A DNA stretch of 64,000 bases, from contig NW_026262604.1 in the NCBI RefSeq assembly GCF_021869535.1, positions 19,220,001 through 19,284,000 on the forward strand, in the 5' to 3' direction. A program made the translations under genes and the position numbers. Each line of letters opens with the position of its first letter. Position 1 is the first letter of the stretch. This DNA comes from Mytilus californianus. Lineage: Eukaryota. Below, piece after piece: positions 12,301 through 54,700 of the stretch. The notes beneath the pieces are model-generated. The model ran no database searches. It was given only the letters and a program-made list of their open reading frames with translations, and had not been told where the DNA came from.

Positions 12301-14799
12301 CTGTCAAATCCTGTTAGAAGTGAATCATAACTTAATAAAATAGATATAAAAACTATGCCATCAAGTCCCTTACAGCTTTTCCTCTTTATAAGGGGTGTGG
12401 TGATATGTTAGCTAGTTCACTTAAGGTTTTTTTAATTTTGAGGAGTATATGACATCTGATCTACCATACTAGTATTACCTTTGTTACGTTTTCTTGCTCC
12501 ATGACCAAGCTTTTGTTGTTGGTTTTAAGAACATAATTTGAATTAAGAAATGTATTTAAGGACCATTTATCTCAGATTAAGACCGATTTAACTTTGTTAT
12601 TAAAAACGTCTGTCCTTCAATATCCCATTTTCTTTAGAATTTAAAATGATGCTTCTCTAATGTAAATCATGTAGATGGAGCATATGCGTTGTATAGACAC
12701 ATTCTGGTTTTTTTTAAGTCTGAAATAATATAAGCTCGGTAAACTATTCGTGATAATTCAATAGTGAATTCAGTTTTACTTCCCTTAATCTATAGAATTC
12801 AATCTAGGCACTGATATATCAAAAGATTATATAAAAATAAGCATGTTATTGACAGGACATACTATAGTTTATTTCTAAGCAACAAACATTTTATTACATT
12901 TAAGTTCAAAAGTCAATGCCACCTATAATGATACAGAGTGTACCGGCATGCAAAATAATAAAATTGAATGTTAAAGGTTACCAAAATTAGTATTGTCGAA
13001 ACAACCAATTGTTGACATAATAACCGAGATCATAGGTCATCTTCACTAGTAATAGACCAAAAAAAGGTACAAAAAAAGAAAAAGTAAAGATATTTATTAT
13101 GTGTTAATAAGATAACATCACATTTGTCTGTTATTGGAGAGTTCTGTTGTTATCAACTTTAACTACAATCAGTATACAATATTTTCAAATACTGGAAACA
13201 TTGAGAGAACATTAATAATGCATTACTGTCTACATCAATGCAGGAATCCTCATAATTGCATAAGCAGAACAAATCATCGTGGGTAGGAAACATCAAGTCA
13301 AATCTACTCAAAAGAACATATAAGTTTATAATTGTAAATTGCATTTTAATTCAGTTGAGATTGAAATAAAGGAATTTTATAAAACCAAGATTTTTGTGCT
13401 AACTAGAAATATGGTAATATGAAAAGAAATTGCGTACATATGGATTGTTCGTTTAAATGTTTTACATATATATATATCGATTTATCGGTTGCTTTGGTCC
13501 AGCTTGTTCGTAATATAAAACCGGATCACTGCATTCAATATATACATATATGTACATGTACCAGTGTCATTTTATCGCTGATAAAGTGAAAAGTATATTA
13601 TATGTGCACGTACGTTGCTTATTTACATAGTGTTTGGGTAATATTAAAATCATACATTCAGTTGAAGACGGGTTCGCAGAAAAGAATCTCGAATGGTCAA
13701 CAATTATACATCGCTCAAAGTAAATAATTATTTATTATAACATAACAACTAATTTCAACAGTAAAAATAAATAACAATACATTGTCCGATTTAAAACGAA
13801 AGTGTATGATTTTTCCTACACTTCAGAATTTATGAACTGAACTTGACATTCACTGAACATGCTGAAATTTACATTGTTACATGGTCGGTTTTGTGTGTTA
13901 CACATGTACACATTCAAGTTTTTAACTCGATGATTGGCGCCGTAGAAAATGGAGTTAATCCTGCTGTTCATGTTTGTCTGTTAGCAGAAAATGGGTTTAA
14001 TGCATATTGCAAATGTTTGAAAACAAACAGAACGTACATTAATCTATAGTTCGCATAAGGTCAAGAAATGCGTCTGCAATACATATTCTGAGGTCACGCA
14101 GGTTCATACAACACTCGTCAACAGCAATACACAAACGTAGTCCGGCAGTGGGCGGACTTTTAAAGCGATATTTGTATAGTATACAGATACAGCCTAGCGA
14201 TATCTGTTGGGCTGTAAATGTATGATAAGACACCCAATTGCAGGATAAATACTTCTACAAAGAGCTTACAATACTTATTTCAGTTCAATGTTTTACTGCA
14301 AGATTTTGACTTTATGCCGTTGGTCAACATGATATTTGTAATTATTTTTAGTTACAGTTTTTTATTTCTAGATTTGTTTTGTTCAGAAATACCTCATTCT
14401 TGGTAATAAAACTAAATACGACTTTGGTTGCACATTACAAGAGTTACGGATTACGTACATAATAGAAATCTTTATTGTTGCACGATATAGTTTCTTCTCA
14501 ACAATGAGGATATGACTTATAGTTACAATTGGTAACAAAACACAGACAATGTGATTGAAATATTTAAACACTTGAAAATATAGATGGCATCAACCTTAAC
14601 AAAAATATCAAACCAGACAAGAATATCATCAAACAGCACAAAACGTTAAAGATTTCTTTTATATATCGTGGCTGATACGCAATTTCGAAAGGTTTACATA
14701 GCTGTGCGTCTTTCCGTCTATCTCATTACTTTCATTTTCATTTTGCATTTAAATAATTGATTAATTAAAGCTCAAATTGCGGATAAATGCATTACAAAA

Positions 14800-14980
14800 A
14801 AAGTAAAATAACAAAAATACCGAACTCCGAGGAAAATTCAAAACGGAAATTCCCTAATCAAATGGCAAAATCAAAAGATAACAACTGTCATATTCCTGAC
14901 TTGGTACAGGCATTTTCTTATGATGAAAATGGTGGATTAAAACTCGTTTTAAAGCTAGCTAAACCTCTCACTTGTATGAC
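14800..14980 (-). mobile_element. 5'-truncated 3' end of the Penelope-like family at 31085-33190
   Basis: aaaagtaaaat.acaaaaatac.gaactccgaggaaaattc...caactgtcatattcctgacttggtacagg, also at about 19630-19790, 29570-29900, 31085-31420, 58435-58580 and 63715-63775. Confidence 0.75.
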
Positions 14981-17900
14981 TTAAAATGTATGTTTTAGCT
15001 ATGCCAAAAGGATATAACAGGCCACATTTTAGGAAAGAGAAATGAACATGCCCATATAGTATGCCAGAAATGCTGCAATGATTCTAATGTCTGTAATTAT
15101 GATCAATCATGTCAAAATCCAACAACAAGTAGGTAGAAAAAAATACACCATATTTTAAAATGTTTGTCGTTAGCAAAAATACATATATGTGTATCGCGGT
15201 CTAGATCTTGCAAAAAATCAAAAAGAAAAAACCCAACATTATAACTATAACGAGTTTGTGTCGTGTATTAAATCATTTATGTGTTATTATATTTCAGTTC
15301 CAGGACAGACATGTCTATCATGTGGTAATGTAGACAATCCGAAAGACTACAATAATTCAATGGCATGTGCAAAAGAAGAGGTATATCTAATTCAATATAT
15401 GTATTTTAACTAGTGATATTCACAATTCGCCACTTCTTCGGAATGACAGTTGACAACAATGAAACGCCATACCCATCTATTCAAGAGTATTTGTATGAAG
15501 AAAACATAATTTGAATGTAATTTTACGTTAAGATCGGTATATGACAGTATATTCCAAGTTAAAAAAAATAATTATCGGTTTTGGGAGTTGAGATAAAAAA
15601 AAAAAAAGCTTTACAATTCGGTGTCATTTTGACTTAGATACGTTGTTACTTACATTATTATATCATTGAATTCAATATATACATACACGTATTCGAATAC
15701 AGTATTTCACTTTGTGTTTTAGGTGTGTTTTCTCCATAAGTATATGACTGAAACGCAGCATGTGAAATATGACCTCGGTTGCAAACACTCAACGGTATGT
15801 TAAAGTTTTTTGAAAAAATTAAAGTCATGCTACAATGAAGTTATTAAATGAATTTAAAATTTTAAAAACTCTGATTTGCTCAACTAGTTCTCAAGAATGG
15901 AATGTACTTGGACCAGATTTGAAAATAAAAAAATGGATAATAAGAGCATTTTAACAGCATCCTCTTGTTTATATTCAGATTAATTTGATTTTTTAAAACA
16001 ATTCAAAAAGAATGAAAAGTTAGAAAACGAAAAACACAAAATCTAAAAATATCTAATATTATCAGAAACAATTTTCTAGAATTAAATTTTTAAAAGCAGC
16101 ATGTTTAAGAGGTCGGTAGGTTTCCTTTTTCTTTCCAATGCCCTTTGATTGTTTTTGCTGTCAAAATTAACTTCTTTTTTGTTTACTTTGCTTAATCATT
16201 TTATTTTTTTTGTTTTTTGTGTTCGTTCTGAATGACAATCATACATGTATTATGTTTATTCGGTTTTAACGTTTTTATCTATTACAACGTGCTCATTAAA
16301 TCCCCTTTTCTGAATTTATTATATGTTACTAAACTGTCAACCTTTTCGTATGCCTTTATGGTTCAAATACGAATGTTTTTGGTCGCCGAACATCTGCTGG
16401 CAAAAATTTAACATGTGAAAACTGTTGTAGTGGAACAGAGCTTTGTAACGTTGACCTCCAATGTAGATAAACAGGCGCGTAAGTTTTTTAAACACAACTG
16501 TATACAAAAGCGCAATGCATGGCAAAACATAATCAGTGGGACTTGAAATGGAATTTTCTATTATTTACATTCTATTTTAGTTTTGAATCTTATAAAGCTT
16601 TATCAAATATACGAAAAAATAAAACATAGACATTGTGACTGTAAAGTTCAAATAATAAATGATTTAAATAAACATACCATACATTTAGAAATTACTGTGT
16701 TCATTTATTATTGCAATTTGTGGAGAATGGGCAAAAATGCAAGATTAAATATTGCAATTTCAGGAAAAACTGCATACATATATACATGTAAGCAGATGTT
16801 ATCATAATGCGAGTTCTGGTTATTGAGATATTTACCTAGTCACATTATACGCATTAATAAAAGCCTCGCAATAGTTTCTGAATTTATGAGTCTTTAAATG
16901 CAGAAAAGGAAATGATGTGTAATGCCCGTCAATAAATGAATGTGAATCATTTGTTCAACTAGACTCTAGCAATGTGCTTCAATCGGGTAATATTGGGACA
17001 ATATCATTAATAATACCTGCATGAAAAGTAAATTAGTTTATATTGTTTTGGGTCGGTTTCTCACGCTTTAACCCATGTTTCATCCAAAATTTTCTCCAGA
17101 AAATACCTGTACTAATCCAAGACTATGACACTTGTTGACTTTTCGTTCCGTTGGTTGATATAGTCAGGCTTTATGGAATTCACTCTTTTTGAATTTTGCA
17201 TGGAGTTTGGTATTTTGGCTTGCAATTCCAAAATTCTGAAATTCGAATAAAATGGATAATACTAATGCAAGAGTATCTTTTTAATCGAAGAAAAAGTTTT
17301 AAATCTACGTGTTTTTCAATTAATAATAAATGTGTCTTTTCATCTTTCTCATATCATTGGTCTGGATCTTGAAATTCAAAGTTTTTCTGGATGTGTGGTT
17401 ATCACTGCCCTTCAACTTCGTTTTATCTTATCGATTTCCTACAACTGTAAATCTATTGGCACTTATGAGTCCCATGTAGACGAAACGCGTGTTAAGTGTA
17501 TTTAATTATAAGCCTGACTTAGCTGGTGAGTTTTACATGTTTTCAGCTTGGTATTCTTATTATATGTCCTGTAAATACTTCAGACAGGCTGTTGCATTTA
17601 ATTTTGTCAAATTTTGTAACACGTTTCAAATAATTTGGAACCCAAATTTTAAGTTGTTATGCTGGCTATTTATACTAAAATTATCGTAAGTAAGGAGAGA
17701 TAACGGTTGCAATAACCCTTGATATGATGTTATTGATAGGAATGATTTTTCGTTATTGAAAGGTATTCATCGAAAATTGATGGATGGATAATTAGATCCT
17801 CGATTAACATAAACCTATAAATATTCCTTGTATATTCGTGATGACAAAATCTCAAAACCGTACGGATATATCCAATTTTTTACTGCTCCGAAGAGGATTG

Positions 17901-33700: not shown

Positions 33701-36700
33701 CAAACACTGTTTAAAAATCCTCACCTTCAGATATAGTAATAACATTATAAATATGAGCAACGGTTTTACCTAAAAGATATTTTCCCCTTTGTCTTAATAA
33801 TATCTGTCTTTTAGGTAAGGTTTTGGATGTTATCTTATTTATTACAAAATAAATAAAGAGTGACATTTAGATTAAATATATTCATTTCAAAAAACAAGTT
33901 ACCTTTCTGAACTCAAGTGACTAGATAATGACTTAGGAATGCTGTTTTATAAAATATGCAAACAATTGAAAAACGTGAAAAATTGGAGTACTTTTGTAAT
34001 TCAGGGACCAAAACAATCGAAATCACCTTTTGTCACTCAGGATAACCGCGAAGTTTTTAAAAGTTTACAAATTAAAATACCGATTTAAGTTAAGCCGGAA
34101 CATTGGAAGACAAAATAATTCATTAGCTGATTTCAATGACGTATTTGGAAGTTGTGGGATTGATTCCCTTCTTTAATAAACTTATATTTTGCGATTGTTT
34201 TTACTAACCATTTTTGTCATTTTTCAGATCTGTTTTGTTCAGAAATACTTTACCCTTGGTAATGAAACTAGATACGATTTTGGTTGTACATATCAGGAGG
34301 TAATCATAATGTTCACAAAATAATTCGTAAAGTTTAATACGAGACATTTTCTTATGATCAATGATGATATGACGCATTGTTACAATGGGTAGTATAAAAC
34401 TGACAATTTGAATAACTATTTGACAATTTTAACGAAAAACCCTGAATATATAGCCAAATAAAAATATTAGCTCTTAAACATGTTAAAAGGATGTAATTGA
34501 TATTTAAAATTTCAAATGTAAAATTATTAGATAAGCAAACAAATTTTAATACCTGAATGTCTTTAAATTTACCTTCACATTTCAACATGTTAAGTAGTAG
34601 TCCGCCTAAGAATCAGGCAGATACCAAATAATTTTAGGAACATGAATTTGGTCAATCTGATGCATTATTTGTATATAAACAGTTATTCTCAACTACTTTC
34701 AGCTGACATAGTTAAAAAAGTGGTATATATTATAATTTGTCTATTTTAGCATGTCAGATTGTGCCATAATGCCTTTAATAATGTACTACAAAAGTACTGA
34801 AATATATATTTTTCATTGAAGAAATACTTGAGAAAACAAATGGGAAACCTTAATATCTTTAAAAAATTAAGAAAAAAAAGTGTCATATGTTATTAAAACA
34901 ATAACTGTTTCTGAGTGTTTTTGTCTCATTAGTACACATATTGTCCTTACAAAAAGACTAGACAATGCTAAAATATAGGTTAGAGTTATCTTCCATTACC
35001 CACAATGCAATAGATTTCAACAATGGCAGCCCCCATGGGCTCCTGCTCAATTGGAGTTTTTGCCTCAACAAAGTGTGGAATATCATCAATGCACCCTTCA
35101 CATACAACTTTATCAAGATAGAAGGACTGCCAGAGGAATATCCAAGCTCATTTGTTGAAAGTTGGATTGAATGCAGGTGTAACAGGAGTAGCAGACGTCA
35201 CATACGAGGGGGAACTTATTTCAAAAAGAGTGGGTTTGTTCACTGTTGAGAGCGACTTCAGTGTTTGTCCATATCATAGAGATTTCCTTGGAATAAACTG
35301 GAGACAAAAGGCCTTGTGCCGATATCCAATTCATGAGGGAAAGGCCAAGCCTTATCGGAGCTTTACAACGGCCATGAGCAGTCAAATGTTAGCCGACTTT
35401 TGTGTATTTGTGCCCATTGGCTCTGGTAAGTACAATGTACTTTATTTTGTTTGTATTCCAATTCATTAATTATATTGTCAAATATATACATAAAATTGAG
35501 AATGGAAATGGGGAATGGGTCAAAGAGACAACAACCCGACCATAGAACAGACAACAGCATAAGGTCACCAACAGGTCTTCAATGCAGCGAGAAATTCCCG
35601 CACCCGGAGGCGTCCTTCAGCTGGCCCCTAAACAATTATATATACTAGTTCAGTGATAATGAACGCCATACTAAACTCCAAATTGTACACAAGAAACTAA
35701 AATTAAAAATAATACAAGACTAACAAAGGCTAGAGGCTCCTGACTTGGGACAAGCGCAAAAATGCGGCGGGGTTAAACATGTTTATGAGATCTCAACCCT
35801 CCCCCTATACCTCTAGCCAATGTAGAAAAGTAAACGCATAACAATACGCACATTAAAATTCAGTTCAAGAGAAGTCCGAGTCTGATGTCAGAAGATGTAA
35901 CCAAAGAAAATAAACAAAATGACAATAATACATAAATAACAACAGACTACATGTTTGTTTATAACTGATGCATTGAGTTTGTTTGGTAACAAACGATTGA
36001 AATCTTTAAACAGGTTCAGTATGTTGACATTTTCAAGGACATTTCTCCCTAAGTAACTGATAATATACATATATGTGTATTTTAAAACAAAGTGCACATT
36101 TTTGTATTGACAAATTACCCCTACATGTACCTTAACATTCTCTTTTTTGTTTGTATTAACATATGCCCTACATGAACTTTATTTTTGAAATCTGCCATGT
36201 CAAGTTGATATATGATAAAGTTGTGCATGCAGGCTCTGTAGAGTCATTTAAGACCGCCCTACAAGAACACCCATAACAATGGGGCTCTTCTCCACTGTGT
36301 ATAAAAGCCATAAGCCCATAACAGGATTCTACACATACCAATACAGATACAGATACCCTCCCCCCTTTTTCCACCACAAACTGAACCCCCAAAAAATAAG
36401 TTTTACATTATATAACCACAGTTTTTTTTATAGGTGATGATCAAGTATTTTGAAAGGGGGACATAGCAAGTTAATGTTTTCACTTTTGATTGATACTTTT
36501 AAAAGTTTATGCATAAACATGATGAAGTTTATCATTTACTTTCAAATTTTCAAAAGTTCAGAATGTATCACCTCCTCTAAATATCCAAAATACATCTAAA
36601 TATATACTTATATAATATGAATGTTTCTTAAATTTAAGTTTTATATGTTTGTAAATATTGTTTATGCTTCTCTTGCAAATGTCTTGGTTTTGGGATTTTA

Positions 36701-39700
36701 TACTAATAAAATAATTTAATTTGTCTTAGACAATACATGATTTTTTAAATAAAGTATTTATTATTATAAGCTACATAATGGAACCCCTCTCCCCCAACTT
36801 AAATGCTTCCTATCAAAATTGATTTTGTCCCCATATTTAAGCTGAATATATAATCCATTATGACATAGACATATATATATATATATATTCTTTATATGAA
36901 TTTTATGCATTCTTTTTTCTTTTTCTTTCAAGGAATATGCAGATAATGTAATGGAGAATACTTGAAAGCATATACATCATGTACAGAAAAAAAGGTAACA
37001 TAGTTTTATTACATATACCAATATAAAACAAAATGTAGGTATAACTGCAAACGGTTTGGGTTTTCTTATACGGTATCTCTACTACCCGAGGGTTATGATT
37101 CTTTTTCTACACTTCATGTGAGGTGGATGATAATTCTGGTCTATGTAAATAAATTGCTAACGGAACCACCATTAAAATTGCATTGAATTTATCATTTATC
37201 TTTATACGACCGCAAAAAATGTTTTGGGATCGTATAATGGTATGATGTCGTCGTCGTCCGAAGACATATTGGTTTCCGGACAAAAACTTTAGTTTAAGTG
37301 AATGGATCTCTATGAAATTTTTTAAGAAGGTCCAATACCACAAAAGGAAGGTTGGGATTTATTGAACCATGTGAGGGAGAATAAAAAAAAAAGATGTTTA
37401 TAATGACAAAAACTCTCAATCAGAAAATTAAGTAGCTTCAGGTCTGTCATTTTATTTTTGCTACCTATATACAAACATGATAGACTAGGCAGTTAGTCTT
37501 CTCAATTAAATAGTTTCATAATTTTTATGTCAGGGCCTTTCATAACAGACTATATGATATGGGGTTGGTTGAAGGCCGTACAGTTGCCTGTAGTGGTTTC
37601 TATCTAATTCATTTAAAATTTGTTTGATATTTGTCTCATTAACAATTACATGTACCCGTATACCATATTTCATTAGTTTTTGTATGTACATGTATGTATA
37701 TGAAATACAATATAAAGACGCAGATGTATGCCGGCATATTGTTTATGACATAGTATACAATAGACATGATAGAATACCAACATCTGCACCTTGAAATTTG
37801 CAGTAAAATATAATTTGCCATAATATTAAATGTTAGTAAGAATTGATTGCTTTTTTTCATATGATTTATTGTCTTCACTGTAATTTGTAAATTGTATCAA
37901 TCAAAAATTAAATATAATCAATGATAAGCATTGTATTTTTTATGTAGGATATCAATGGCAATGGCATGGATATAGAGATTGATGATCCAAATGAAGACAA
38001 ACCTAATGTTAATAAATTTGTAAGTATAGTTTAGTGTGGCACACATACATATATCATGAATATTGTTCAGTATGGTGAAGTAGTAGGCAGGTGGGTGAGG
38101 GGAAACAGGGTAGATAATTTCTACAATTAAAGAAGAGCCAAATGATGTTACATGTGTATGAAGTTATAAAAGGTTGGTAAAAAATATATACAAAAGGAAT
38201 ATTCAAACTCATAAATTGAAAACAAACATATCATGAGGGAAAGATTTTTTTTTTGGAAGAGGGGGAAATTTTTTTTCTCAATTCAGATTTCAGAAATTAA
38301 CAAATAAAATTTCTTCCAATATTTTTTTCTTGTTGGCAAAATAAAGGGTGAGGGGGAGGGGGTAACAAATTTCTTTTTTTGGAGAGGAGGGGGGTCAATA
38401 CGCAACAGCATAGTGTATTGCTTAAAAGCAAAAAAAGGGGGAGTGGGTTAAATTCGCAACAGCATAGTGTATTGCACAAAAACAAAATATTGAATATATA
38501 AATATAAATTCAAATCATATAACCAATTCTAAGTTCTTTGATTAAAGTTATTCTGTGTCAGAAACCTATTATTGTAAAATATTTAATTACAATCCAAATT
38601 CAGACATGTATTAAGCATCGCCAGTAAAACTGCATTTGTGACAGTCAAATCGACAATTGACGGTGGCAACTCTTCAACTACAGTACTGTTATTCCTTCAG
38701 TGTGCTTATCAGTCTATATGATTGTGACCTCATTTTTTTGTTCGTTTTCCAATGTTAAGTTTAGTTTTTATACGACCGCAAAAAAATTTTCCGGTCGTAT
38801 ATTTGAATGACGTTCGCGTCGTCGTCGACCAAAGACACATTGGTTTTCGCACTCTAACTTGAGTTTAAGTAAATGGATCTCTATGAAATTTTACCATAAG
38901 GTTCAATACCACAAAAGGAAGGTTGGGATTGATTTTGGGGGTTATGGTACCAACAGTTAAGGAATGAGGGGCCAAGAATAAGCATTTGTATAACTTCCAG
39001 ACATAACTTGTGTGTTAGTGTATGGATCTCGCTGACATTGTACCACAAGGTTCCATATCACAAAGGGAATACTGGGATTGATATTGGGGGAAATTGCCCA
39101 AAACGTTTTGGAATTTGGGGCCAAAAAGGGGCCAAAAAACAAACATTTTTCTAGTTTCCAGACAATAAATTGTGTTCAAGTGTACGGATCTCTCTGAAAT
39201 TGTACTGCAAGGTACCATACCTCCACATTTTAGGAATAAGGGAAAAAAAAAGGGGCAACAAACAAGCATTTTTCTAGTTTTATGAAAATTACTTGTGTGT
39301 AAGTGTATGGATCTTTTTGCAATTGTACTACAAGGTTCCATATCACAAAGGAAAAACTGGAATTGAGTTTGGGGGTAATTGCCCGAAACGTTTTGGAATT
39401 TGGGGCCAAAAAGGGGCCAAAAAACAAGCATTTTTCTAGTTTCCAAACAATAACTTGTGTTTAAGTGTACGGATCTCTCTGAAATTGTACTGCAAGGTAC
39501 CATACCCCAAAGGGAAGGTTGGGATTGAGTTTTGGGGGGATGAATCATAAGGGGGCTCAGAAAAATTGAGGGGGGATATTTTTTTCCTTTTTTTTCTATA
39601 AAATTTTTCATTTTAAATTGGTTATTTCTGATTTATAAATAAAAGCAAAATAATAATGATATGATTTAAATAGGTAAATTAAAAATGTTTCAGTTCTTAG

Positions 39701-42700
39701 ACAACATTCATTCGGTGTCAGAAACCTATGCTGTGTCAAATATTTAATCAAAATCCAAATTCAGTGCTGTATCAAGCTTGAATGTTGTGTCCATACATGC
39801 CCCAACTGTTCAGGGATCGACCTCTGCGGTCGTATCAAGCTGCGCCCAGCGGAGCATTTCGTTTTAGTTTATGTAAGGAATGAAACAGGTGAGAAATTTT
39901 AGTAGTTGCACTCTTGTTTTTTAGGACATGTAGGAGTAGATTTGTACAAGAGAAATATATTGTTGTTACAAAAGTCAAGTTTAAGTCAACAAACTTGCTT
40001 ATATTGTAGTCAAAATTAGTGGCTACAACAGATGATGAAGATGAGCATTGTAACTATACACTTCGCACGAGAAAAACAAATTCATCTACCTTTGATAAGG
40101 TAAGTCAGTCACTGTAATCATAACACATTTAAGAACAATATAACCAAATAAAAAAGGTTGAAAACTTCTTGCAGAAGAATTGTATCCATCCAGATAACTT
40201 CATATTCATAGAAATTAATATTATCAGGCATATAACATTAGAAAATGAATGCGCTTATTTATCTGTATATCTTGAAATAATTCTCGCTTAAATTTAAAAA
40301 AAAATATCTTCTCTCTTACAAACGATGTGTTATTTGGTCCAAGACAAACAGAAAGAACCCACATGAGAAGCAGCATTCAACAGTTGAACACAAGATAAAA
40401 AAATACTATTTCAATTATTTAAAAAAATAAATGTGGATAGTGTCCACATGTGGACATAGATGATGCCCCCGCTTGAATATCATATAGTTATAAAGGGACA
40501 TAACTGAAGAACGGTAAAAAAGACGCTACCCAAATTTGAACTTGATCTGAATTTTGTGGTAATAAGCATTGTGTGGAAGTCTCATAACATTTGGTTGAGG
40601 CTAACTTAAGTAGAGAACAGAAACTAAAAATTCAGCAATTTTTCTATTTGTAAACACGCATAACTCTAGAACGGTTGTGTATAAGTTTTATAACATTTGG
40701 TTGAGACAAACTAAAGTTAGAGAACGGAAATGAAAAATTCAGCAATTTTTATGTTTATAAAGGGACATAACTCAAGAATGGTAAAAGTGTCGCCACCGAA
40801 TTTCGTACTTAATCTGTATTATGTAGTAATAAGCATTGTGTATAAGTTTCAAAATATTTGGTTGAGGCAAACTAAAGTTGGAAAACGGAAACCAAAAATT
40901 TGTACTTGATCTTAGTTTTGTGGTAATGAATATTGTGTATAGGTTTCATAATGTTTGGTTGGGGCAAACTTAAGTTATAGAATGGAAACTAAAAATTTTG
41001 CAATCTTTTGATTTATAAGGGGGCATAACTTAATAATGGTTAAAGTGACACTACCCAAATTCAACTTGATCTGTGTTTTATCCGTGGAAGTCAAAATTAA
41101 ACATTGCATTGTATAAAGCATTGATTGTAGTTGATTCAACTATAATCATGGACAAAGGAAGATAACTCCAATTTTAAAAATTACTTGATATTTAGAAGAA
41201 AATAAAATTTTTGCAATGTTTCCATTTATAAAGGGGCATAACTCTAGAACAGTTTAAGTGACGCCACCAAAATTCAAACTTGATCTGTGTTTTGTGGTAA
41301 TAAGTATTGTATATAAGTTTCATAACATTTGGTTGAGGCAAACTTAAGTTAGAGAACGGAAACTAAAAATTTTGCAATTTTTCCATTTTTAAGGGGTATA
41401 ACTCTAGAACGGTTTAAGTGACGCCAACAAAATTCAGACTTGATCTGTGTTTTGTGGTAATTAGCATTGTGTATTTATAAGTTTCATAACATTTGGTTGA
41501 GGCAAACTTAAGTAAGAGAACGGAAACCAATTTTGGGACGTACGTACGTGCGTACGTACAGACGGACAAGGGTAAAACTTATTGCCACACAGCTACGGCG
41601 TGGGCATTAAAAGCTCTATAACAACATGAACAATATGACCTCTCATATAAAACAAAAAGTAAGACCAGATGCTCCTGACTAGTCAGCATTACTTGATCCA
41701 TGTATGGTACCTGTCATGTAAGGCAGCACCAAACACAACTTTTATTGCAAAACTATGGTTATCACAATACTATAATAAATACATGTACATGCAGCATAAG
41801 CTTTGACAAACATCTTACAACATTGTATAAAAAAGTACAAATGTAATATAATGAGAGTCACTTCATCTGTGTCCTGTTTGTATTTTAAAGTTTCTGTTTC
41901 ACTTCAATGAAGTTGAAAAAGGAAGATTTCAGCATGCTGTCTCCTGAAAAAAAAAGAATGTTGGGATTGATTTTGGGGGTAATGGCCCTAACTTTTTCGG
42001 AAAAAGGGACCAACATCAAGTCAATACTTTTCTAATACTTCTATATATGAATTGCTTATTTATAGATCAATTTAATTGGGTTTAAATCAAAACTTTATTC
42101 TTCTTTGGGGTTTTTATCAAAAATTGAATTCTTGGGATTCTTTGATAAGCCAAATGTAACTGTATATTCAGAATCTTAAGTATGGGCCCTGTTTCTAAAT
42201 TGGTCCACATTAAGGCCCTCAAGGGTCTAAATAAAACTTTGTTTGATTTCATAAAAAATCAATTATTGGGGTTCTTTGATATGCCTATTATTCTTACCTC
42301 ATATTTATATTTTTATACACTGCCAAAAAATTTTGGAGTCGTATATTGGTATCACTTTGCCATCTGCAATGTCAGAAGACACCTAGTTTCCGGACAATAA
42401 CTTTAGTTTAAGTGAATGGATCTCTATGAAATTAACCACAAAAGGAAGGTTGGGAATGATTTCGGGGGTTATGTTCCCAACTGTTTAGGAATTTAGGGCC
42501 TAAAAAGGGGTCCAAATAAGTATTTTTATACGCCCGTTTATGGGACATATTATGGTTTGCTGTTGTCCGTCTGTCCGTCCGTCCGTCGTCAACATGTCGG
42601 ACTTTAATTCAAAAACGCTTTAACCAATATGCATGAAACTTTGGTGAAGTGTTTATATCTATTGACGTGAGCTCCCTTTCGTTTTTTATAAATTTGGGAT

Positions 42701-45700
42701 TTACGTTTCAGAGTTTTGGGGTTTTATTCATTAAAAAAGGGGGGATTTTCCAGTTTTGGGACAATAACCCAAAAACAATTTCACCAATTTGCATGAAACT
42801 TTTGTGAATGTTTTATATCTATTGACGTGAGCTCCCTTTTGTTTTTTTATAAATTTCTGATTTACCGTTTCCGAGTTTTGGGGTTTTATATAGGGATGTC
42901 AACGAGTACTCGAGTACTCGAGTATCGCTAGTTAGTACCGAGTATCGAATACCAAAACGATACTCGACTAATCAGTTTCCTGTTAGAATGTTGTTGCTTT
43001 CTTAAGCTTAAACAAAAATATTTTTATTGAGAGCGCCTCCTAGGAAATAAAATATTAATCAATATTAAAATATGTCTCGAATGTGTGCGTTTAATTGTCA
43101 TTTTAAATTCCTCCGAACAGAGGTAGGCTATGAACAAGAGCACCTTTCCAATGCTTACACTTTTAGCTAATCTTATAGTCATTCCCCCTCCCCCACCTCT
43201 GTACCGTCAGAGCAAATATTTTCATCAGCAGGAATGTTAAATACGTAACAAAGTTGAGAAATAACCTCGTCGCAGAAAAAGCTGACAAGATAATATTTCT
43301 AAATAAGAACAAATTCGTTGCACCCTGTGTTGACCCTCAGAAAATGATTAAAGGCATCAATAAGTTCTAATCATTACCCCTTTGCTGACCATTAATGTGT
43401 TTTTTTACGATTCCCAAATACTGTTGTTTGAGTAATCATTTTTCTAAAGATGTGTTTTAACATGATTAATTAATTGATTAGATTATTGCCAATTTACTTA
43501 ATTGGTACAAGTAGTAAATGAGCTATTAATTATGGTATAAAATTCCTGGAACAATTATCTAGTCCTAGGTAATATTGTTGAGGGTTTTACGTTAAGAAAA
43601 CGACAAACAATACATAAAATAGGTATGATTTTGTGTTTCCATTTTGTAGATGTTTTTCCGAGCGAGTACTTGAGTATCACTCGGTAAATCCAACGAGTAC
43701 TCGATTAGTAAATCTTTATCGAGTTGACATCCCTAGTTTTATTCATTAAAATAGGGGGGGGGATTTTCCAGTTTTCTGACAATAACTCAAAAACAATTTC
43801 ACCAATTTGCAAGAAACTTTGACGAATTGTTCATTTCTATCGACATGAACTCCCTTTTGATTTTTATAAATTTTAGACTATACGTTTCCGATTTATGGGG
43901 TTTTATTCATTACAAAAATAGGGATTTTCCAGTTTTCGGACAATAACTCAAATGTTATGAAACTTTGGTAAATTGTTTATATCTATTTTTGTAAGCTCCC
44001 TTTTTATATTTATAAATTTTTGAATTTAGGTTTCCGAGTTATAAGATTTTATTTGTTTATAGTCTTGACAACAGATTTACTTAGCATTGCGCAACAGCAC
44101 AGTGTTTTGCACAACAGCAAGAAATCTTTAATTAAATATCAATTCAATTCATATAACCAATTTCAAGTTCTTCGACTACATTTATTCAGAAACCTATAAT
44201 ATGTCAAATATCTTATTACAATCCAAATTCAGACCTGTATCAAGCTTGAATATTGTGTCCATTTTTGCCCCAACTGTTCAGGGTTGGACCTCTGCGGGCG
44301 TATCCAGCTGCGCTCAGCGAAGCAGTTTATCCTAGTTTCCAGACAATAACTTGTGTGTAAATGTATGGATGTTTCTGAATTTGTACCATAAGGTTCCATA
44401 CCAAAAAAGGAAGGTTGGGATCGATTTTGGTGGTTATGGCCTTTTCTGTTTAGGAATTAGGGGCCAAAAACAATATTTGTATAAATTGTTTATTTCTTGA
44501 CCAATTTCAATAGGGTTTTATTCTTGAATTTGTGGGGTTCTTTAATATGCTGAATGTAACCGTGTATAACGTTTTTGGATTTTGGGCCCTGTTTTTAAAG
44601 TGGTCCACATTGAGATCCAAAGGGTCCAAAACTAAACTTTGTTTGATTTCATTAAAAATTGAATTATTAGCGTTCTTTGATATACGAATCTATCCGTGTA
44701 TTTAGATGTTTGATATATTGTCCTGTTTTCAAACTGGGATACATTAAGGTCCGAAGGGTCCAAAATTAAACTTAGTTTGATTTTAACAAAAAATATTCTT
44801 GATTTCTTGGGGTTCTTTGATATGCTGAATCTATACATGTATTTAGATTTTTGATTATGGGCCCAGTTTTCAAGTTGGTCCAAATTTGGGTCCAAAATTA
44901 AACTTTGTGTGATATCAACAAAAATTGAATTATTGGGGTTCTTTGCTATGACGAATCTATTCGTGTATATAGATTTTTAATTTTTGGTCCCGTTTTCAAA
45001 TTGGTCTTCATTAAGATCCAAAGGGTACAAAATTAAACTTAGTTTGATTTTAACAAAAATTTAATTCTTTGGGTTCTTTGATTTGCTGAATCTAAACATG
45101 TATTTAAATTTTTGATTATGGGCCCAGTTTTCAAGTTGGTCCAAATCGGGGTCCAAAATAAAACTTTGTTTGATTTCAACAAAAATTTAATTATTGTGGT
45201 TCTTTGATATGCTGAATCTAACTGTGTTTGGATTTTGGGCCCTGTTGTCAAATTAGTCAACAGGTCAAAAGGGTCCAAAATTACACTTTTCTTTTATTAA
45301 AAGATAAACTTTGTTTGATTTCTGACATCAAAAATATAATTAATGTTAGTCTTTTATTTGATATGCTGAATTCTAACCATGTATATTAAGAAATTGTTGA
45401 ACATCCTTACATATGATATTGTTTAGTTCTTTTTGAATGACAATTGTTACCTGCATGATTTTCTATTTATAGAATTTATACACATATTCACAAGACAGCG
45501 AGGGGCAAGTTAGTACAGTGTGCAGCAGTCAAGATTCAAGTTGGAGCCAAGGGGACGAAGTATTGCCTCTTAAAGAAATCCAAATTGCTGATATCAACAA
45601 GGCTATTTATGTTCTAGGTCATGGTTGTATCAGTCCACTTAGATCAAAGCTGAACACAAAAATAGATGAAGCAAAAAACCGAACCATCCGATACTACAAA

Positions 45701-48700
45701 AGAAAGGCTGAGGAAACATCTGAAGCTCTATATAATGCTATTGCACCTAAACAAGGAACTAAACTAAGGAGAATTTCTGATCAGGTTCCAGTAACGAAAG
45801 GTGATGATGACCTTCTTTATGTTGTTTTCCAGATGTGTAAAAGTATAAAGGATGCAGATGTAAAGTGTCAACTTTTGTCTCTTGTTGTGAACCAGTTTTC
45901 AAAGACTGATTTGTTGACATGGATTCCTGAGATCACAAAATATCAAATAGATAAAGCCAGAAAACATGCATTTGTTAATGGTCCTGGCTCATGTATACAA
46001 TCTTCAAAGACACAACAACATAGAAAGAGAATAAACTATGTCATATTACAGCATGCTGTAGAATTCTTCAGTGACCCATCTTTCAAACAAATATCATCTT
46101 ACACTACCCATGACCTAAAATTAGACTCGGGAGATATTCTTGTTATCCCAGATGTTGTTAGAACAGTCATCAATTCAAACTTGATTAAACTGTATAAACT
46201 CTACTGTGCCGACAATGATTTCAATCCTCTAAGTGACTCAACACTGTATCAAGTTTTGAATGCATGTGAAGCATCCAAAAGGAAGTGCCTTAAAGGTTTA
46301 GACAACATTGCTGTAGATGGCACCACAGCATTTGACAACATTTTGTCCCTAATTTCCAAGCTGAACAAAACAGAGGACTGGAAGAGTACATTTAAGAGCA
46401 AACTTTTAAATAGTAGACTGTACTTAAAAACAGATTACAAACTGCATATAAAAAGAGAAGATGAATGTGCCTTCCATTGCCTGCAGTATTCATTAAGTGA
46501 TCCAAAAGTTGGTGCCCTTAGTGTTGGATGTGAACATGCATCAAAAGGCATGCGACAGATGTCTGCTGCTTGGAGATATTGTTGAAGAAGTTCGGTTGGC
46601 CATTTTATCCAGCTGTCCAGAGGATCAAGAAGCTTTCCTCCAAGACCTGGAAATATCAACAAGGCAGATTGAGGACTGGAGATCTCACATCTTGAGAACA
46701 ATCAACCAAGATGATGTCAGGTTTGATCTTCTGAACAGCATACAAGGCAATGAAGAAATTATTATCATAGATTGGGCAGTGAAATACCTTCCACAGATGT
46801 TTAGGGAAAGAATGAAAGATTTCTTTGGTCAAAAAGGGATGCACTGGCATGTGTGTGTTGCCATTTTTAAAGATGAAGACAACAGTTTAAAGGTAAGAGT
46901 AATATTATTTAAATGATAATCCTATTTACCATTATAATGAACCTAAATGTCATCAAACATGGCAGCCATTATTACTGAAAATTTAAAATATATATATGCA
47001 ACAAAAATCTTGAAAAACTCTGTAAACAAAAATATTACATAACAAAAATTATTAATGACCAAACAGCTAAAAGTGGCCCATTGATGAGGAAAAACTACAA
47101 GTAATGCAAAAAAATTAAAAATCTTTAAAAAAAAACAATTGTTACTGAATTTCATGGAAATAATTCACCAAGCTTGGCCACCACTATTCCTTAAAGGTGT
47201 AATACCACCATTGATTTTCCCTATTAGTCTTTGTTAAATTTGCACTTTTCAAAAAATTGTGCAGAATTTATCTTTGTTTCAAATAAAGAAATACTTGGCA
47301 TGAATAAAGTTTTATCATGTCCAGTACTATAGAAAAAATTTCACATAACATTTCATTGCATATAAGAAAATAACCATCACTGGAAGTTAACCAATCAAAT
47401 TTTCCCCCTTTTTAAACCTGTGTACTAGCTTTAGTAACCATGTAACCTCAAGTTTCCAAAATGTTCTATAGAAACCCCAAATAAAAAAATAATGGTGATT
47501 TGAAATACCCAAGATATATGTTTAAGACCCAGAAATGTTTTACTGCAATGAAATGTAAGATCAATTACCTACAACTGTCAAATTCAAGTGAATATTTTTT
47601 CCGACCTATTTTCGTATGCAACCGGATGTGACGTACTATGATTTGGTGGTATTACACCTAAACAAACATTTTTTTCCAAAATGATTGGACAGTAACATGA
47701 TGGCTGCATGGAACATAGTTAGGGAACCAACAAACCCTATGGGAAATTTTTTTAAGTACACATGTCTGCTTTCACCAATCTGAACCAAACTTGATAAGAA
47801 TGATATTTGAAAATTCAATAAGTTTGTCAGTTACTTCGTTATCAAGCATGGTTAGGTCTGCAATTTCCCTTGAGTACTCTGGATTCCTAAAACATTGGCA
47901 TTGGTGACCAATAGATAAATAAATCCATTCCCCATTTCCATTCTCAATTTTATTTATATTAAATGAGAAGACCTTATTTTGCGTGTTGCTTCTCTTTTTT
48001 CCACAATAAATTAATTATCAACCATCTGTGTCCTAACGGTACCATGCACAGTCGCATTTGTCATTCTCTTTTATGATTATTCAGTTTCGGTTATTTTGAG
48101 AGAAAAATGGAAATAAGGCGTCCAGATATTGTTTCCGTCATTGGAAAGATTTTTAAGTCATAGACAAGACTTCCGTTATATTTAGGACTGTGAAAACAAC
48201 AAATAGTTTTGATAGATACTTGGGAACAGGACAATTATTTTTGCGTTACATATTCTATAAATAGAGTGTATTTGCTATTTACTGTTGGTGACACAGTGGA
48301 AAGTAAACTTTGAAATGATAGTAAATAGGAAATACACTTTATTTATAGTATATGTATGTTCATAGTAACAGAAGAATTGAATAATAGAAAACAAAAAATT
48401 ACGGATTTTGGAAAAAGGAGGATGAAAGAAAAAAATTGTAATGTCAGCCTACAGAAGTTTTACATACTTTAAACCACGGTCTAAATTACAGCTATTTCGC
48501 AAGTGTGTTTTAGTTTTATTTATTTGTAGAAAGTCATATTAAACACCATCCATACTTTGACGGTATACAATAAGAACTGATTTTTATTTTAGCACAAGAC
48601 CTTTACTTATATAATGGACCATGTGAAGCAGAACTTCTTCGGTGTTTTATCCCTGTTGGAGCACACACTATCTTCTATTAAGAAACCGTTACCACAAATC

Positions 48701-51700
48701 ACAGAGGCATACCTTAGATCTAACAACGCTGGTTGTTACCATTGTGGTCAGCTGTGGCTAGCAATACCAAGTTTGTCAGAATGAACAGGTAATATTATAT
48801 CACTTTCACTGAAATACAAATATGGAGTTTTTTAGGATTTTGTTTTGGTACCATGCCCAACATAATAGGAGAGGGAGGGCATAGAAATAACAGTGAGTTA
48901 TGTTCCTTGGAAATGTTAATGACATAAATTCCTTTGTAAGGGCTCCCACATATACCATAATTGCTAGGTTTTTATAAAACTTGTATCAAACATTGTCAAA
49001 TGCTTATTCAAGAATGAGCAATTTCTGGGAAAAATTATTACAAATATCTCAAGGTACTATTCTTTACAAAGCACAAAAATGTCATTATTCACCTCAAAAG
49101 CTAACAAAACCTTTAAACAGACTTATTAAGAAGGGATATGGTTATGATACTGTTGTCAGGTCATTAAAGATTGCATATTTTGGCTTTAATATTGATTCAC
49201 TTATAGGGTCTTTGCATCGGAATTAAACACATTTATTCTAAAACCAGTTGTTGGCATGACACGGGTTATGTTCTTCTCATATATTTTATGACGGTATAAT
49301 ACTAAACCCCTAACAGGAGGGATTGTGCCCGATATTCATATGATGAAGACATAATCTTGTCATAATGTCAGTAACTGCTAGTAGTCTGTTGTTATTTATG
49401 TATTATTGTCATTTTGTTCATTTTCTTTTGTTTCCTATTCTGACATCGGACTCGGACTTCTCTTATACTGAGTTTTACTTTGCGTACTGTTGTGCGTTTG
49501 TTTTTTCTACATTGGCTAGAGGTAAAGGGGGAGGGTTGAGATCTCAAAACACATGTTTAACCCGCCGCATTTTTGCGCCTGTCTAATGTCAGGAGCCTCT
49601 GGCCTTTGTTAGTCTTGTATCATTTTTAATTTTAGTTTCCTGTGTGTAATTTGGAGTTTAGTATGACGTCCATTATCACTGAACTAGTTTATATAATTTG
49701 TTTAGGGGCCAGCTGAAGGACGCCTCCGGGTGCGGGAGTTTCTCGCTGCATTGAAGACCTATTGGTGGCCTTCAGCTGTTGTCTGCTCTATGGTCGGGTT
49801 GTTGTCTCTTTGACATATTCTCCATTTATTCTAAATTTTATACATGTATATCCTGCTCCACATTTGTAAATTTTAATCCATCTCCAACATAAAGATAAAT
49901 TAAGGAACAAGTGAAATGTACTGTAGGATAATATACCCTTTTAAAGGAATTTAAAAATTGGTGTATTTGCTGGACCAATTCACTAACATTTAAAGATGAA
50001 TGCGAGGAAAAAATAAATATTGGAACTTCAGGCCAGTTTGTGTTAGTATCGCCAAGATCTTGTTCACACTCGTTACAAAAAGTAAGTTGTCAGGGTCATC
50101 TATCTAAAAAAAAAAGAAATAAGGTCAAAAGACACTACCAAAAGCCCTCTCGACCAATCATATTATCTTATTCCTTAATATGATAATCATATAAGAATTA
50201 TTTCAATATATATGTTTACTCTCATCAATGTTTGTAGGTTGTATCTTTATAAATAAAAAAAACAAAACAAAAGCATTATTTATTTTTTTAGGGATACAAA
50301 TCAAAAGTTATGATTATAGTGAGGCCCAGAGTGGCAAAAGCTACTGTGATCCTAAAATTGCCCATATGAGACAAAAAATGAGAATTTTCTCTGCAGAAGG
50401 CCATAACATCACTACAGCTATGCAGATGAAAGAAGCGATTGATAGTGGAGCTGGAGTTAAAGGAGTTTATGCATCAGTTGTTGATGTTGATACAAGAAAG
50501 CATCAGCTTAAAACACATTCTTGGAAAGGTGTAAGCTTTATCATGAATGTAGATTACACAAGTTCTGGAATAAAAACATGGAAAGCATACAGAATAGGAG
50601 ATGGTTGCTTTATCGAGAACAACAAGGTAAAGCAAATGTTTCGCGGTGAACAACCAGCTACTTGTTTACAGATCATCAGTGATGACTTTCAAGATCATGA
50701 GTCATCAGGGCATATCAATCTAAAACAAGGAACATCAGCAGAAATTCATGAACAACATGTATCATCCAACCAAACTGCCTCATCAAAGTTCCTCATCATC
50801 AAACCAATCAATAGTCATAGAACAACAAATTCCTCAATCATCAAATTGTACTACAGTCTTAGAAGAATTGGACACTTCATTACAAGACCATGAAGGCAAT
50901 AATGTTGACAACGTATTCTATTGCCCAGAGTATGGCTGCACTAAGGCTTATCAGTCATTTGAAAAAATGCAAGATAACATTCTCATTGGAAAACACTCAA
51001 AACAACTATTAAATGACTCAACTTATGACAAAGCTAAAAAGATCTGGGCTGAAAAATGTGAAAATCTTCATGCTTCTACTCATGTCACTATTGAATCTGA
51101 TCCTGGAACCTCTAGCAGCAACAATTTCAATATACCTGCAATGGGTTGGGCGTTAAAGAGAGAAAAAGTATGTCAGATTTTCACAGAATGTGAAATCATA
51201 TCTTACAGAATTATTTAAGATTGGAGAGGCTAGTGGCAAGAAAGAAAATCCAGCAGCTGTTGCTATGAACATGCGTAACATGTCAGAAAATGGAAGACGA
51301 AAGTTTTCCCCCAATGAATGGTTACAACCTAGCCAAATTGCATCATTTTTTTTCAAGACTTGCTATGAATGCAGGAAAGACAATAATGTGTATACACAGC
51401 TGTGATTTAGATGCTGGTGACAGTGATTTATTGGCCGTGCTGAATGAATTAGAGAATCAAGAAATCCATGAAAAATTACATTTATAGTCAATCACTCTAT
51501 TTGTCTGTTTGTAACTAAATCTTGAAGACATTTTATTTCACTATGACAAAATTTCAATGTGAGGGATATCAATCGTTTGGCTTTCATTGTTTGTACCTCA
51601 GTCGTCTGAACATAAAGTTTTGTAAGAAAGTTTATTGAAAGGTCATCTATAAAATTCATGTTTTTATGCCCCACCTGTGATAGACACATTGGTTTTCTCA

Positions 51701-54700
51701 CTCTTACTTTATATAAGTTAATTGATCTCTATGAAATTTTACCATAAGGTTAAATACCACAAAAGGAAGGTTGGGATTGATTTTGGGGGTTATGGTACCA
51801 ACAGTTAAGGAATTAGTGGTCAAAAATAACTTCCAGACATAACTTGTGTATTAGTATATGGATCTCTCTGACATTGTACTATAAGATTCCATATCACAAA
51901 GGAAAAGCTGGGTTTGAGTTTGTGGGTAATTGCCCTAAACTTTTAGGAATTAGGGACAAAAAAAACAAGCATTTTTCTAGTTTCCAGACAATAACTTGTG
52001 TTCAAGTGTATGGATCTCTTTGAAATTGTACTGCAATGTACCATACCACAAAGGGAAGGCTGGGATTGAGTTTGGGGGTGATGAATCATAAGGGGGTTCA
52101 AAAAATTTGGGGGGGATTTTTTTTTCATTTTTTTTCTTTAAAATTTTCCATTTTAAATTGGTTATTTCTGATTAATATATAAAAGCAAATAATGATGATA
52201 TGGTTTGAATAGGTAAATTAATTTTTTTTAAGTTCTTATACCACATTCATTCTGTGTCAGAAACCTATGCTGTGTCAAATATTTAATTACAATCCAAATT
52301 CAGTGCTGTATCAAGCTTGAATGTTGTGTCCATACTTGCCCCAACTGTTCAGGGTTCGACCTTTGCAGTAGTATCAAGCTGTGCCCAGCGGAGCATTTTA
52401 TTTCCAATTTTACTTTTCCTTTAAAGCTTTAGATACATATATATATAGTAGCTTGATGCAAGGTGTAGTTAGATTAAATAAATTAGAAGGATGAAAACTA
52501 CACACCCTCAAGATATCGTAACAATCTGACTATCTTTTGGATTATGGCATATGAAATGTGAATTTTTTGCCTCCAGTTTGAGCTATTTAGGCTGTGGGCC
52601 TCTAGTTTTTAATCTTTTAATTACTCGCACCCATGTAGACAACTGATTGTTTATGTTGCCATTAACTTATAATTCTAACCAAGTTCATGTTATTTTGCTG
52701 GTCTTCATTGTATGAAGCATTGTATTGTAAAATAGCAAAAAAAGGGTTCCGATGATCCCATTTTTTCTGAAATTTTAGCAGTTTGTTGAAGGTCATTATA
52801 TTAAGGTCAAGGTCATCAAATGTTGAAAACAATTAACAGAATTGATAACTGAAGTATTTGATTGAAAAATGTTTTGATTCAGTTTACTTAAGTAAATATT
52901 TTTTTAATTGTCAATTTCAAGGGTCAAAATGGTTATTTGTTGTGCCGTGAAATTTGAAGTTATTTTAATAAACTTTTTTCCGGCAAAAAATAAAAAAAAC
53001 CCAATTTTTTTTTTCATCAAAATATTTAAAAACAGCATTGTTTTTAATATCAATAAATGAAATGTTCCTGTGAATGTGTTTTTTTTTTAAACCATTGTTC
53101 AAAAATGTCAAAAAAACAGCCTTTTTGGACAATTTCGCTTTCTCTTATTATATGTTCAACAGAAAACATTAGTGTTAACATAGAAAGTAAGATAAGAGAT
53201 GTTCATGTATAGAAATGCATTCTTAAATGTAACTTTTTATCATATACTTTAGTTGTTTTTGCCATTTCTTACCTGGATGTGATTATTTTGCATTCAATAT
53301 ATAGTCAAATTAGTGAATTGTGATGTTTTCAATGACCTTTCAAGCAGTATTACCTTATCTTGCGTTACCATGGAAACGGTAAAAAATTAAAAAGATTTGA
53401 ACAATGAAAAATAATAATATGGATAAGGTGTTATAAAAAGAGAACTTAAGATGCAATTTTGTGATATCAATGTACCATGCTCTACCTGACTCTTAGCTGG
53501 AACAGTACTTAAATATTCATATTCTAATTTTTTATCTAAAGCATTGGTTAATCAAAGAATAGTTTCTTCATGTTATTGGCTGAAAGTAACTTAAAAAAAG
53601 ATTTTTGAATCTGAATATCTTAAACTTTTTCTTAACATTTTTATAACTCCATTCTTATTTTGTCCACAAAGAATTTGTGTATGAAGTATTTTTCTGAAAT
53701 CAATGTGTTTTTGATTAACCAATCTGTTTTGCAGCTATGCCAGAAGGATATAACAGGACATATTTTCGGAAAGAGAAACGAACATGCCCATATTGCATGC
53801 CAGAAATGCTGCAATGATTCTAATATCTGTAATAACGATCGTTCATGTGGAAATGTAATAACAAGTATGTAGCTAAGTTACACCACATGGTATTTATATG
53901 AATTAAACATATTATAAAGTATGTTTATCACAGTCTGTTTCATTAAAAAAGAAACAGTTATAAATTATGAATAGTATTTTTTAAGATAAAACACGTAATG
54001 AGAATTTGTTTTTCAATTTCAGTACAGCAATGTCTATCCTGTGATCATGTGAACAATCCGAAAATCTGTAATTACACAATGACATGTGATAAAGGAGAGG
54101 TAATCTTTAAGTTTGACATTCTTCTTTTACTTAGGAATCAAAGCCAGGTTCTAATTGCAATAGAACATATGCTGCAAGTGATTGACGTCACAATTGAAAT
54201 TTCGAACAACACGTACGCTCCGTATAAAGATATCAATACTTACACAGCTTACACATGTTAAAATGAGCATAGAACACGGCATGACATTACCATTTTTAAC
54301 AGATTTCAACTTCGCTAAAACAGCTTCGACTATAGACAAAAGCAAATCACTTTACCTATTGAATTGGTTCGGAAGTGTACAGCAACAGACCTCATGTCAT
54401 TTCAAGATATATATAAATATATGAATGGGAATAAATGAATGAAATCTCTGAATAGCTCTGCAATCACAAACGGTGTATCAACGGAGACGTCGGGTCATGC
54501 AACTTAAACATGTCGGTGTTGTGGGGTGATATAGGTAGCGTTTACAATTTTTACATAACAAATTTGCTTTGTTAGTAACTGACGGTATAATATTGTTTAT
54601 ATATAAATCTTCCTATATCTATCATCATAAATACCAGGATTGAAATTTCATATTTGCGCCAGACGCGCTTTTCGTCTACAAAAGACTCATCAGTGACGCT

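Follow-up and report, generated by a model that had tools for sequence, protein, structure and literature searches.

Evidence for a very large Sola3-group DNA transposon family in Mytilus californianus, with a defunct copy in an intron of a three-finger gene

The 64,000-nucleotide stretch of Mytilus californianus DNA analysed here (the window, C24:19220001-19284000 in the 1.65-Gb genome; positions below are window positions unless a contig is named) contains an 18.9-kb mobile element at 34594-53508, which lies in an intron of a gene with exons of the three-finger type. This element is very probably a defunct copy of a low-copy and very large (14-22 kb) DNA transposon family of the Sola3 group in Mytilus. 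An earlier sequence-only reading of the window had proposed a TTAA-targeting, intron-containing DNA transposon with short terminal inverted repeats (TIRs) on the strand of the host gene, and the present analysis supports this description.

The element is bounded on each side by a 28-bp TIR and a copy of the target site duplication (TSD) TTAA. At the left end, TTAA (34590-34593) is followed from 34594 by GTAGTAGTCCGCCTAAGAATCAGGCAGA; the left TIR (34594-34621, plus strand) begins with 5'-GTAGTAG and is identical in nine genomic copies. At the right end, TCTACCTGACTCTTAGCTGGAACAGTAC runs up to 53508 and is followed by TTAA (53509-53512), and the right TIR (53481-53508, minus strand) is one base off the family consensus (GGTAGA vs GGCAGA). 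The inverted repeats are imperfect, with 21 of 28 positions identical in the window copy and 22 of 28 in sister copies. Re-reading the sequence placed the TTAA-flanked termini and their 21/28 match exactly where they had been claimed. Inverted similarity past 28 nt is not significant (local score 25, compared with a shuffle mean of 22.9). The observed 5'-GTA...TAC-3' ends are the same in relatives down to ~62-77% protein identity.

Related loci were found with a 355-residue reading frame of the window (45518-46585), and 20 kb around the best seven were compared with the window. More than 100 related loci are present in the same genome, seven of them 91-96% identical at the protein level. At the loci on contigs C96 and C110, which have unrelated flanks, homology starts at 34587-34590 and stops at 53512-53514, and TTAA adjoins the same 28-mers at either end. 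A genome-wide pattern search with up to three mismatches returned 10 left ends and 12 right ends, and a reversed control pattern returned none. The paired ends define about 10 elements of 14.2 to 21.6 kb at unrelated loci, and an older 3.3-kb internal-deletion derivative on C121 has the same ends. The termini first noticed in the window are thus shared by other copies. TTAA is found on both sides of the window copy and of the copies c24b, c96 and c110; at nine further ends the outer tetramer is TTAA or one change away from it, with four one-change cases overall. The C121 copy has a non-canonical duplication whose two sides match, both being TTAC. From each other, the copies differ by 2-6%.

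The empty site that had been predicted is present 112 kb downstream, at C24:19366041, in a paralogous copy of the host gene. Here both flanks are contiguous, with 91.5% identity over 862 nt (left flank 88%, right flank 91%), and the junction reads CATGTTTAATATTC with a single tetramer, where the window has CATG-TTAA-[element]-TTAA-ATATTC. One might argue instead that the 19-kb unit does not move as one piece, that the 28-mers and TTAA arose by chance or are those of a smaller element, and that the sharing between loci reflects segmental duplication of host DNA. A 21/28 match is by itself weak evidence, and the window and C24:19508869 are indeed segmental duplicates including their flanks, as are two copies on C93. 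However, at at least five loci with unrelated flanks the homology breaks off precisely at the 28-mers, next to a 4-bp duplication, which in one copy is TTAC on both sides. These independent insertions refute the reading, to which we give almost no probability, and the empty paralogous site and the silent control pattern also speak against it. Since independent copies share their ends and TSD, the reversed control matches nothing and the paralogous site is empty, the element is a mobile unit in its own right, whose insertion duplicates 4 bp with a preference for TTAA.

The assignment to Sola3 comes from the transposase. A word-based search with a 700-residue frame of a distant family member yielded 84 proteins from bivalves, limpets, corals, anemones, nemerteans and amphioxus, all of them unnamed and 900-1,140 residues long where full-length; the top database matches belong to Mytilus species. 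The homologues share the near-invariant blocks MDWAMKFLPxxFRExQxDWFGKxGISWHV ... LRSDNAGCYH ... YDFSExQSGKDxCDR, which in the sister copies read MDWAMKYLPQMFRERMKDFFGQKGMHWHV, LRSDNAGCYH and IQIKRYDYSEAQSGKSYCD. The supplementary alignment of Majorek et al. 2014 (PMC3985635) includes, as clade E.13 'Sola3', the RNase H-like core of a C. remanei protein next to that of Sola3-1_HM, a Repbase reference. The corresponding blocks are KDYCQKVLPSKFREGQKEYFGKKGMSLHV, KSDNASSYH and IQLKRYDYNEPCRGKD in Sola3-1_HM, and MDWSQKVIP...GKSGISVHV, LRSDNAGCYH and FSEAQGGK in C. remanei (PMC3985635). All three blocks of the mussel family are colinear with both E.13 sequences, with ~40-60% identity inside the blocks by a manual count made by eye. 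In C. remanei the LRSDNAGCYH block is the same letter for letter, and the IQIKRYDYSE of the mussel family has its counterpart in IQLKRYDYNE of Hydra. Sola3-1_HM (Hydra) and CRE_08425 (C. remanei) thus show the same D-W/Y-x-x-K-x-L/I-P...FRE.Q...FGK.G.S.HV, SDNA..YH and (I Q L/I K R) YD(F/Y)(S/N)E...GK(D) patterns and the same short gap between the second and third acidic residues. They also agree with the mussel family in a 4-bp TSD and in having no Pfam model. The Sola3-like identity suggested by the sequence-only reading is borne out by these core blocks, and the comparison supports placing the transposase in the Sola3 group. The family differs from the two references in its size of 14-22 kb, in its five-exon gene and in introns full of nested repeats. 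Its 4-bp duplication is that of Sola3, for which TTAA is the TSD.

For the fold, an AlphaFold model of the homologue P0030 was computed from a 45-sequence alignment (mean pLDDT 76.5, core mostly 80-96). The predicted core has the order b1-b2-b3-a-b4-a-b5-a and is RNase H-like, with D648 on b1, D732 immediately behind b4 and D773 on the helix that follows b5. These three residues are at least 90% conserved among the 45 homologues, with a spacing of 84 and 41 residues; we infer the third catalytic residue to be D773 and not the E/D close by in the 'SE' block. The best Foldseek PDB matches of the model are retroviral integrase catalytic cores, with probabilities of 0.97-1.0. Transposases of the Sola superfamily were reportedly described as DDD enzymes by Bao et al. 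in 2009, and the three modelled Asp with their 84/41 spacing fit this description. On the predicted RNase H-like fold the family retains the DDD set, and the window copy has lost it, with Asn in the second position. Pfam scans of the window reading frames, of long frames of distant members and of full-length homologues (E<=1-10) gave nothing but a weak C2H2 finger, a PDB sequence-profile search matched only C2H2 fingers, and the ESM Atlas returned unnamed eukaryotic clusters only. DUF7869, carried by 12% of one of these clusters, had no match in a direct scan and was dismissed. To our knowledge, Sola3 has neither a Pfam model nor a solved structure.

Two other superfamilies duplicate TTAA. Kolobok elements, which are abundant in bivalves, target this tetramer and have 5'-RR...YY-3' termini (PMC9587614), and the bivalve Kolobok, KolobokD and KolobokP elements (Kojima & Bao 2022, PMC9587614) resemble the mussel family in TTAA-specific insertion and spliced transposase genes. 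A C/DxxH motif, in most cases with a zinc finger after it, separates the second Asp from the last catalytic residue in Kolobok as well as in hAT, P and MuDR (PMC9587614). Of the Kolobok hallmarks, namely the RR...YY ends, C/DxxH, the zinc finger in the catalytic domain and accessory nucleases (PMC9587614), none was found here. The ends are 5'-GT...AC-3', so that in terminal features the TSD alone agrees; the 41 residues between D732 and D773 hold no CxxH, DxxH or zinc finger, and the CYH that immediately follows the second Asp has the form CxH, not CxxH. As the core blocks match the Sola3 references instead, we consider a Kolobok origin highly improbable. A divergent piggyBac-like element would likewise explain the TTAA target, three conserved Asp with DDD-type chemistry and short TIRs, and the G-K-D-x-C-D block is loosely reminiscent of the piggyBac motif GGVDxxD. 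However, neither the window frames nor the full-length homologues matched Pfam DDE_Tnp_1_7 (PF13843) at E<=1-10, and no piggyBac chain appeared in the PDB sequence search or among the top Foldseek matches listed; the same holds for hAT, P and Transib chains. The core is compact and integrase-like, with 41 residues from the second to the third Asp and no piggyBac insertion domain. The termini also differ, those of piggyBac being CCC...GGG. Very little probability is therefore left for membership in piggyBac.

Several points weigh against the placement in Sola3 and against parts of the model presented here. Membership is a motif-by-motif comparison with two published sequences and carries no E-value. 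The GTA...TAC ends and TIRs of only 28 bp differ from the GAG...CTC ends and long TIRs said to be usual for Sola3, and may set the family apart from other Sola3 elements; since superfamily assignment in Repbase rests on the transposase, the termini were not treated as defining. Introns 1 and 2 of the transposase gene are predicted ones, the RNA coverage having been examined from 45430 on, transposition activity is deduced from copy structure only, and a 98%-identical copy of the locus, described below, may be an assembly duplicate and not a true segmental duplication.

The exon model of the transposase gene, which lies on the plus strand, was built from tblastn with the homologues P0030 and P0032, a short-motif search and inspection of splice sites. 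Exon 1 (35023-35425, ATG at 35023) encodes the Cys/His-rich N-terminal region, is matched by P0030 and P0032 and is open in the sister copy c96, with the donor G/GTAAGT. The predicted exon 2 (36933-36994, 62 nt), which reads ICRKCNGEYLKAYTSCTEKK in sister copies, completes the conserved PIGSG-ICRxC motif by which it was found, and has AG/GT sites, a polypyrimidine tract and in-frame joins. Exon 3 (45473-46892) carries the first catalytic Asp block IDWAVKYLPQMFRE...GQKGMHWHV and is backed by tblastn, sister copies and sense reads. The second catalytic block, LRSNNAGCYH in the window copy, lies in exon 4 (48593-48788), which has RNA joints on both sides. Exon 5 (50292 to ~51487), for which RNA contigs and sister copies are available, encodes the C-terminal domain, preceded by the third catalytic block IQIKSYDYSEAQSGKSYCD and a C2H2 zinc finger (FYCPEYGCTKAY...H). 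Each of the five exons has AG/GT sites and joins in phase. In c96, where the exons were inspected singly, all five are open, and their lengths sum to 1,095 codons.

Transcripts were examined over 45430-51420 with the reads of one RNA-seq run and the contigs of three further runs that behave like transcriptomes. The GT..AG joint 46890>48591 is present in six reads and three contigs, and the joint 48786>50290 in three contigs. The contigs of three runs break at 45471, with up to 683 more letters upstream, which indicates a splice acceptor at this position. Introns 1 and 2 are predicted from homology and splice sites. Exon coverage stems almost entirely from read pairs with the first mate on the minus strand, the orientation that in the usual stranded libraries denotes plus-strand RNA. 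RNA of the transposase family is thus transcribed from the sense strand and correctly spliced. Over 50290-51420 the contigs are contiguous, with 11 gap letters that equal the sum of the three exon-5 indels of the window copy. An intron between 50716 and 50830 was therefore rejected: RNA contigs and sister copies show a window-specific 8-bp deletion there. The sequence-only reading had counted seven exons, six introns and roughly 1,150 codons; the presence of introns holds, and the counts become five coding exons, four introns and 1,095 codons. The surplus exons arose because at least three frame changes, caused by deletions of 2, 8 and 2 bp, had been read as introns.

These lesions belong to a longer list obtained by comparing the window copy with its sister copies. 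Stop codons, all on the plus strand, interrupt exon 1 (35119-35121), exon 2 (36944-36946) and exon 4 (48782-48784). A 2-bp deletion after 46536 shifts the frame in exon 3, and exon 5 has an 8-bp deletion near 50782, a further 2-bp deletion after 51158 (both also evident against RNA) and a 1-bp insertion at 51346. At 48722-48724, Asn replaces the Asp that is the second catalytic residue. In addition, a nested high-copy repeat is inserted on the minus strand at 35492-35952 (456 nt plus a second TACAT copy), which is absent from c24b and all other copies. With three stops, four indels, the Asp-to-Asn change and one nested repeat insertion, the window copy is, judged from its sequence, dead and mutated beyond function, and cannot encode the transposase that had been ascribed to it. 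Five of the lesions, namely the stops in exons 1 and 4, the exon 3 frameshift, the Asn and the 1-bp insertion, are shared with the copy 254 kb away and are therefore older than that duplication. In all RNA reads position 48722 is G (A>G), which restores Asp, and the RNA is free of the extra T at 51346. As the RNA carries the sister-copy alleles at the covered positions, there is no sign that the window copy feeds the transcripts seen.

An active element would produce a 1,095-residue transposase from five exons, in which a Cys/His region at the N terminus and then a helical region precede the RNase H-like core with its three Asp, and a C2H2 zinc finger and finally the C-terminal domain follow it. 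The enzyme would bind the 28-bp TIRs, excise the whole unit and reinsert it at TTAA, whereby the tetramer would be duplicated. The family may possibly still be active, since it is transcribed in sense and correctly spliced, at least one sister copy, c96, is open with all three catalytic Asp and the copies are only 2-6% apart, although we regard activity as rather less probable than not. If active, it would be a natural TTAA-specific transposon of 16-22 kb outside piggyBac and the first tractable Sola3 system, and would offer a test of seamless TTAA excision beyond piggyBac. We know of no Sola3 transposase that has been tested experimentally, and few superfamily divisions of eukaryotic DNA transposons are as little characterised as Sola3. 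A survey of bivalve transposons found Sola3 reading frames and curated no full-length Sola3 element (PMC10294476). Together, the locus and its sister copies give the complete anatomy of a mussel Sola3 family, with ends, TTAA target, five-exon gene and predicted DDD core. It is a new family that is ordinary for the known Sola3 kind and notable for its size, its intron load and its expressed sister copies.

The host gene is represented on the plus strand by exon b (34228-34299, 72 nt, ICFVQKYFTLGNETRYDFGCTYQE), which is in phase 0 at either end, has a Cys-rich pattern and is followed from 34300 by a GT donor, and by exon c (53735-53857, 123 nt), which ends in ...CCNDSNICN. This ending is a Cys pattern typical of Ly6/uPAR three-finger domains; neither exon alone, being too short, has a Pfam match. 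The intron between them (34300-53734) measures 19,435 nt, in line with the expansion to 19.4 kb claimed earlier, and 516 nt without the element and one TTAA. For annotation, the 19-kb "intron" of the three-finger gene is thus a transposon insertion, and frameshift lesions of a dead copy can pass for introns. A 98%-identical copy 254 kb downstream has the window's flanks too and points to a duplication of the whole locus, or possibly to an assembly duplicate. The element would have inserted into a ~0.5-kb intron of the three-finger-domain gene, in the orientation of the gene, after the split from the 91%-identical paralogue with the empty site 112 kb away and before the locus duplication that gave the 98%-identical copy. 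Because host and transposase genes are both on the plus strand, the host pre-mRNA gains four donor/acceptor pairs and the 3' end of the transposase gene from the element. These may disturb host splicing, for instance by the truncation or exonisation that the sequence-only reading suggested.

The host exon pair recurs at least seven times within ~670 kb of the contig at 69-99% identity and forms a tandem gene array (C24:19304411-19305380, 19365614-19366476, 19508433-19527698, 19555498-19556467 and 19564798-19565767, and window 14335-15136). Within this array, the transposon is found only in the window copy and its 98% duplicate.

The coding exons of the element total 3.3 kb, and the introns measure 1.5, 8.5, 1.7 and 1.5 kb, followed by a 2-kb 3' region. 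The element owes its large size to the four introns and the 3' region, which are packed with nested high-copy repeats and with tandem arrays. Intron 2 contains a 1.2-kb high-copy repeat with 97- and 107-bp tandem units (40412-41616), which has dozens of 92-95% matches genome-wide and 38,822 candidates in a first-look genome search, and is nested in every transposon copy that spans it. Further tandem arrays lie at 44519-45236 (126/261 bp) and 39247-39538 (162 bp). Since sister copies that span the nested repeats have them at identical positions, the repeats were carried along during transposition, and the unusual size of the element reflects repeat-laden introns mobilised together with it.

Pieces of another high-copy repeat were found at 35492-35952 (window-specific), 47926-47959 and 49030-49827, the last in all family copies. 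The repeat at 35492-35952 is an inverted copy of that at 49381-49827; the inverted pair 35506-35950/49381-49827 was discarded as a candidate internal TIR, its left arm being the window-specific nested insertion. RNA of other repeat copies covers 47030-48029 and 49030-49829 hundreds-fold on both strands. Many RNA reads join 49815 back to 47926, from which it follows that the canonical repeat runs into 47926-47959 and that the element's copy is rearranged or split.

Other Sola3 subfamilies with 30-41% protein identity and frames of up to 700 residues occur in the same genome at the loci L027-L034 (C24:4458000, C93:5218000, C121:103668000, C35:17630000, C154:61413000, C132:56190000, C24:35052000 and C88:4610000). 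Copies of two of these subfamilies are homologous over the whole 10 kb compared, so that these elements exceed 10 kb. Under a Gammaproteobacteria metagenome-assembled genome (MAG), a 3.9-kb contig encodes a 968-residue Sola3-like transposase (P0041, DSY43_06820) that matches the mussel protein at 34% identity across 89% of its length, C-terminal domains of eukaryote type included; this contig is probably animal DNA binned into a bacterial MAG. Near-identical exon 3 words are present in sequencing runs of at least two organism labels at a share of 0.47-0.59, and at a lower share of 0.15-0.20 under four more labels, which places the family or close relatives of it in several related taxa.

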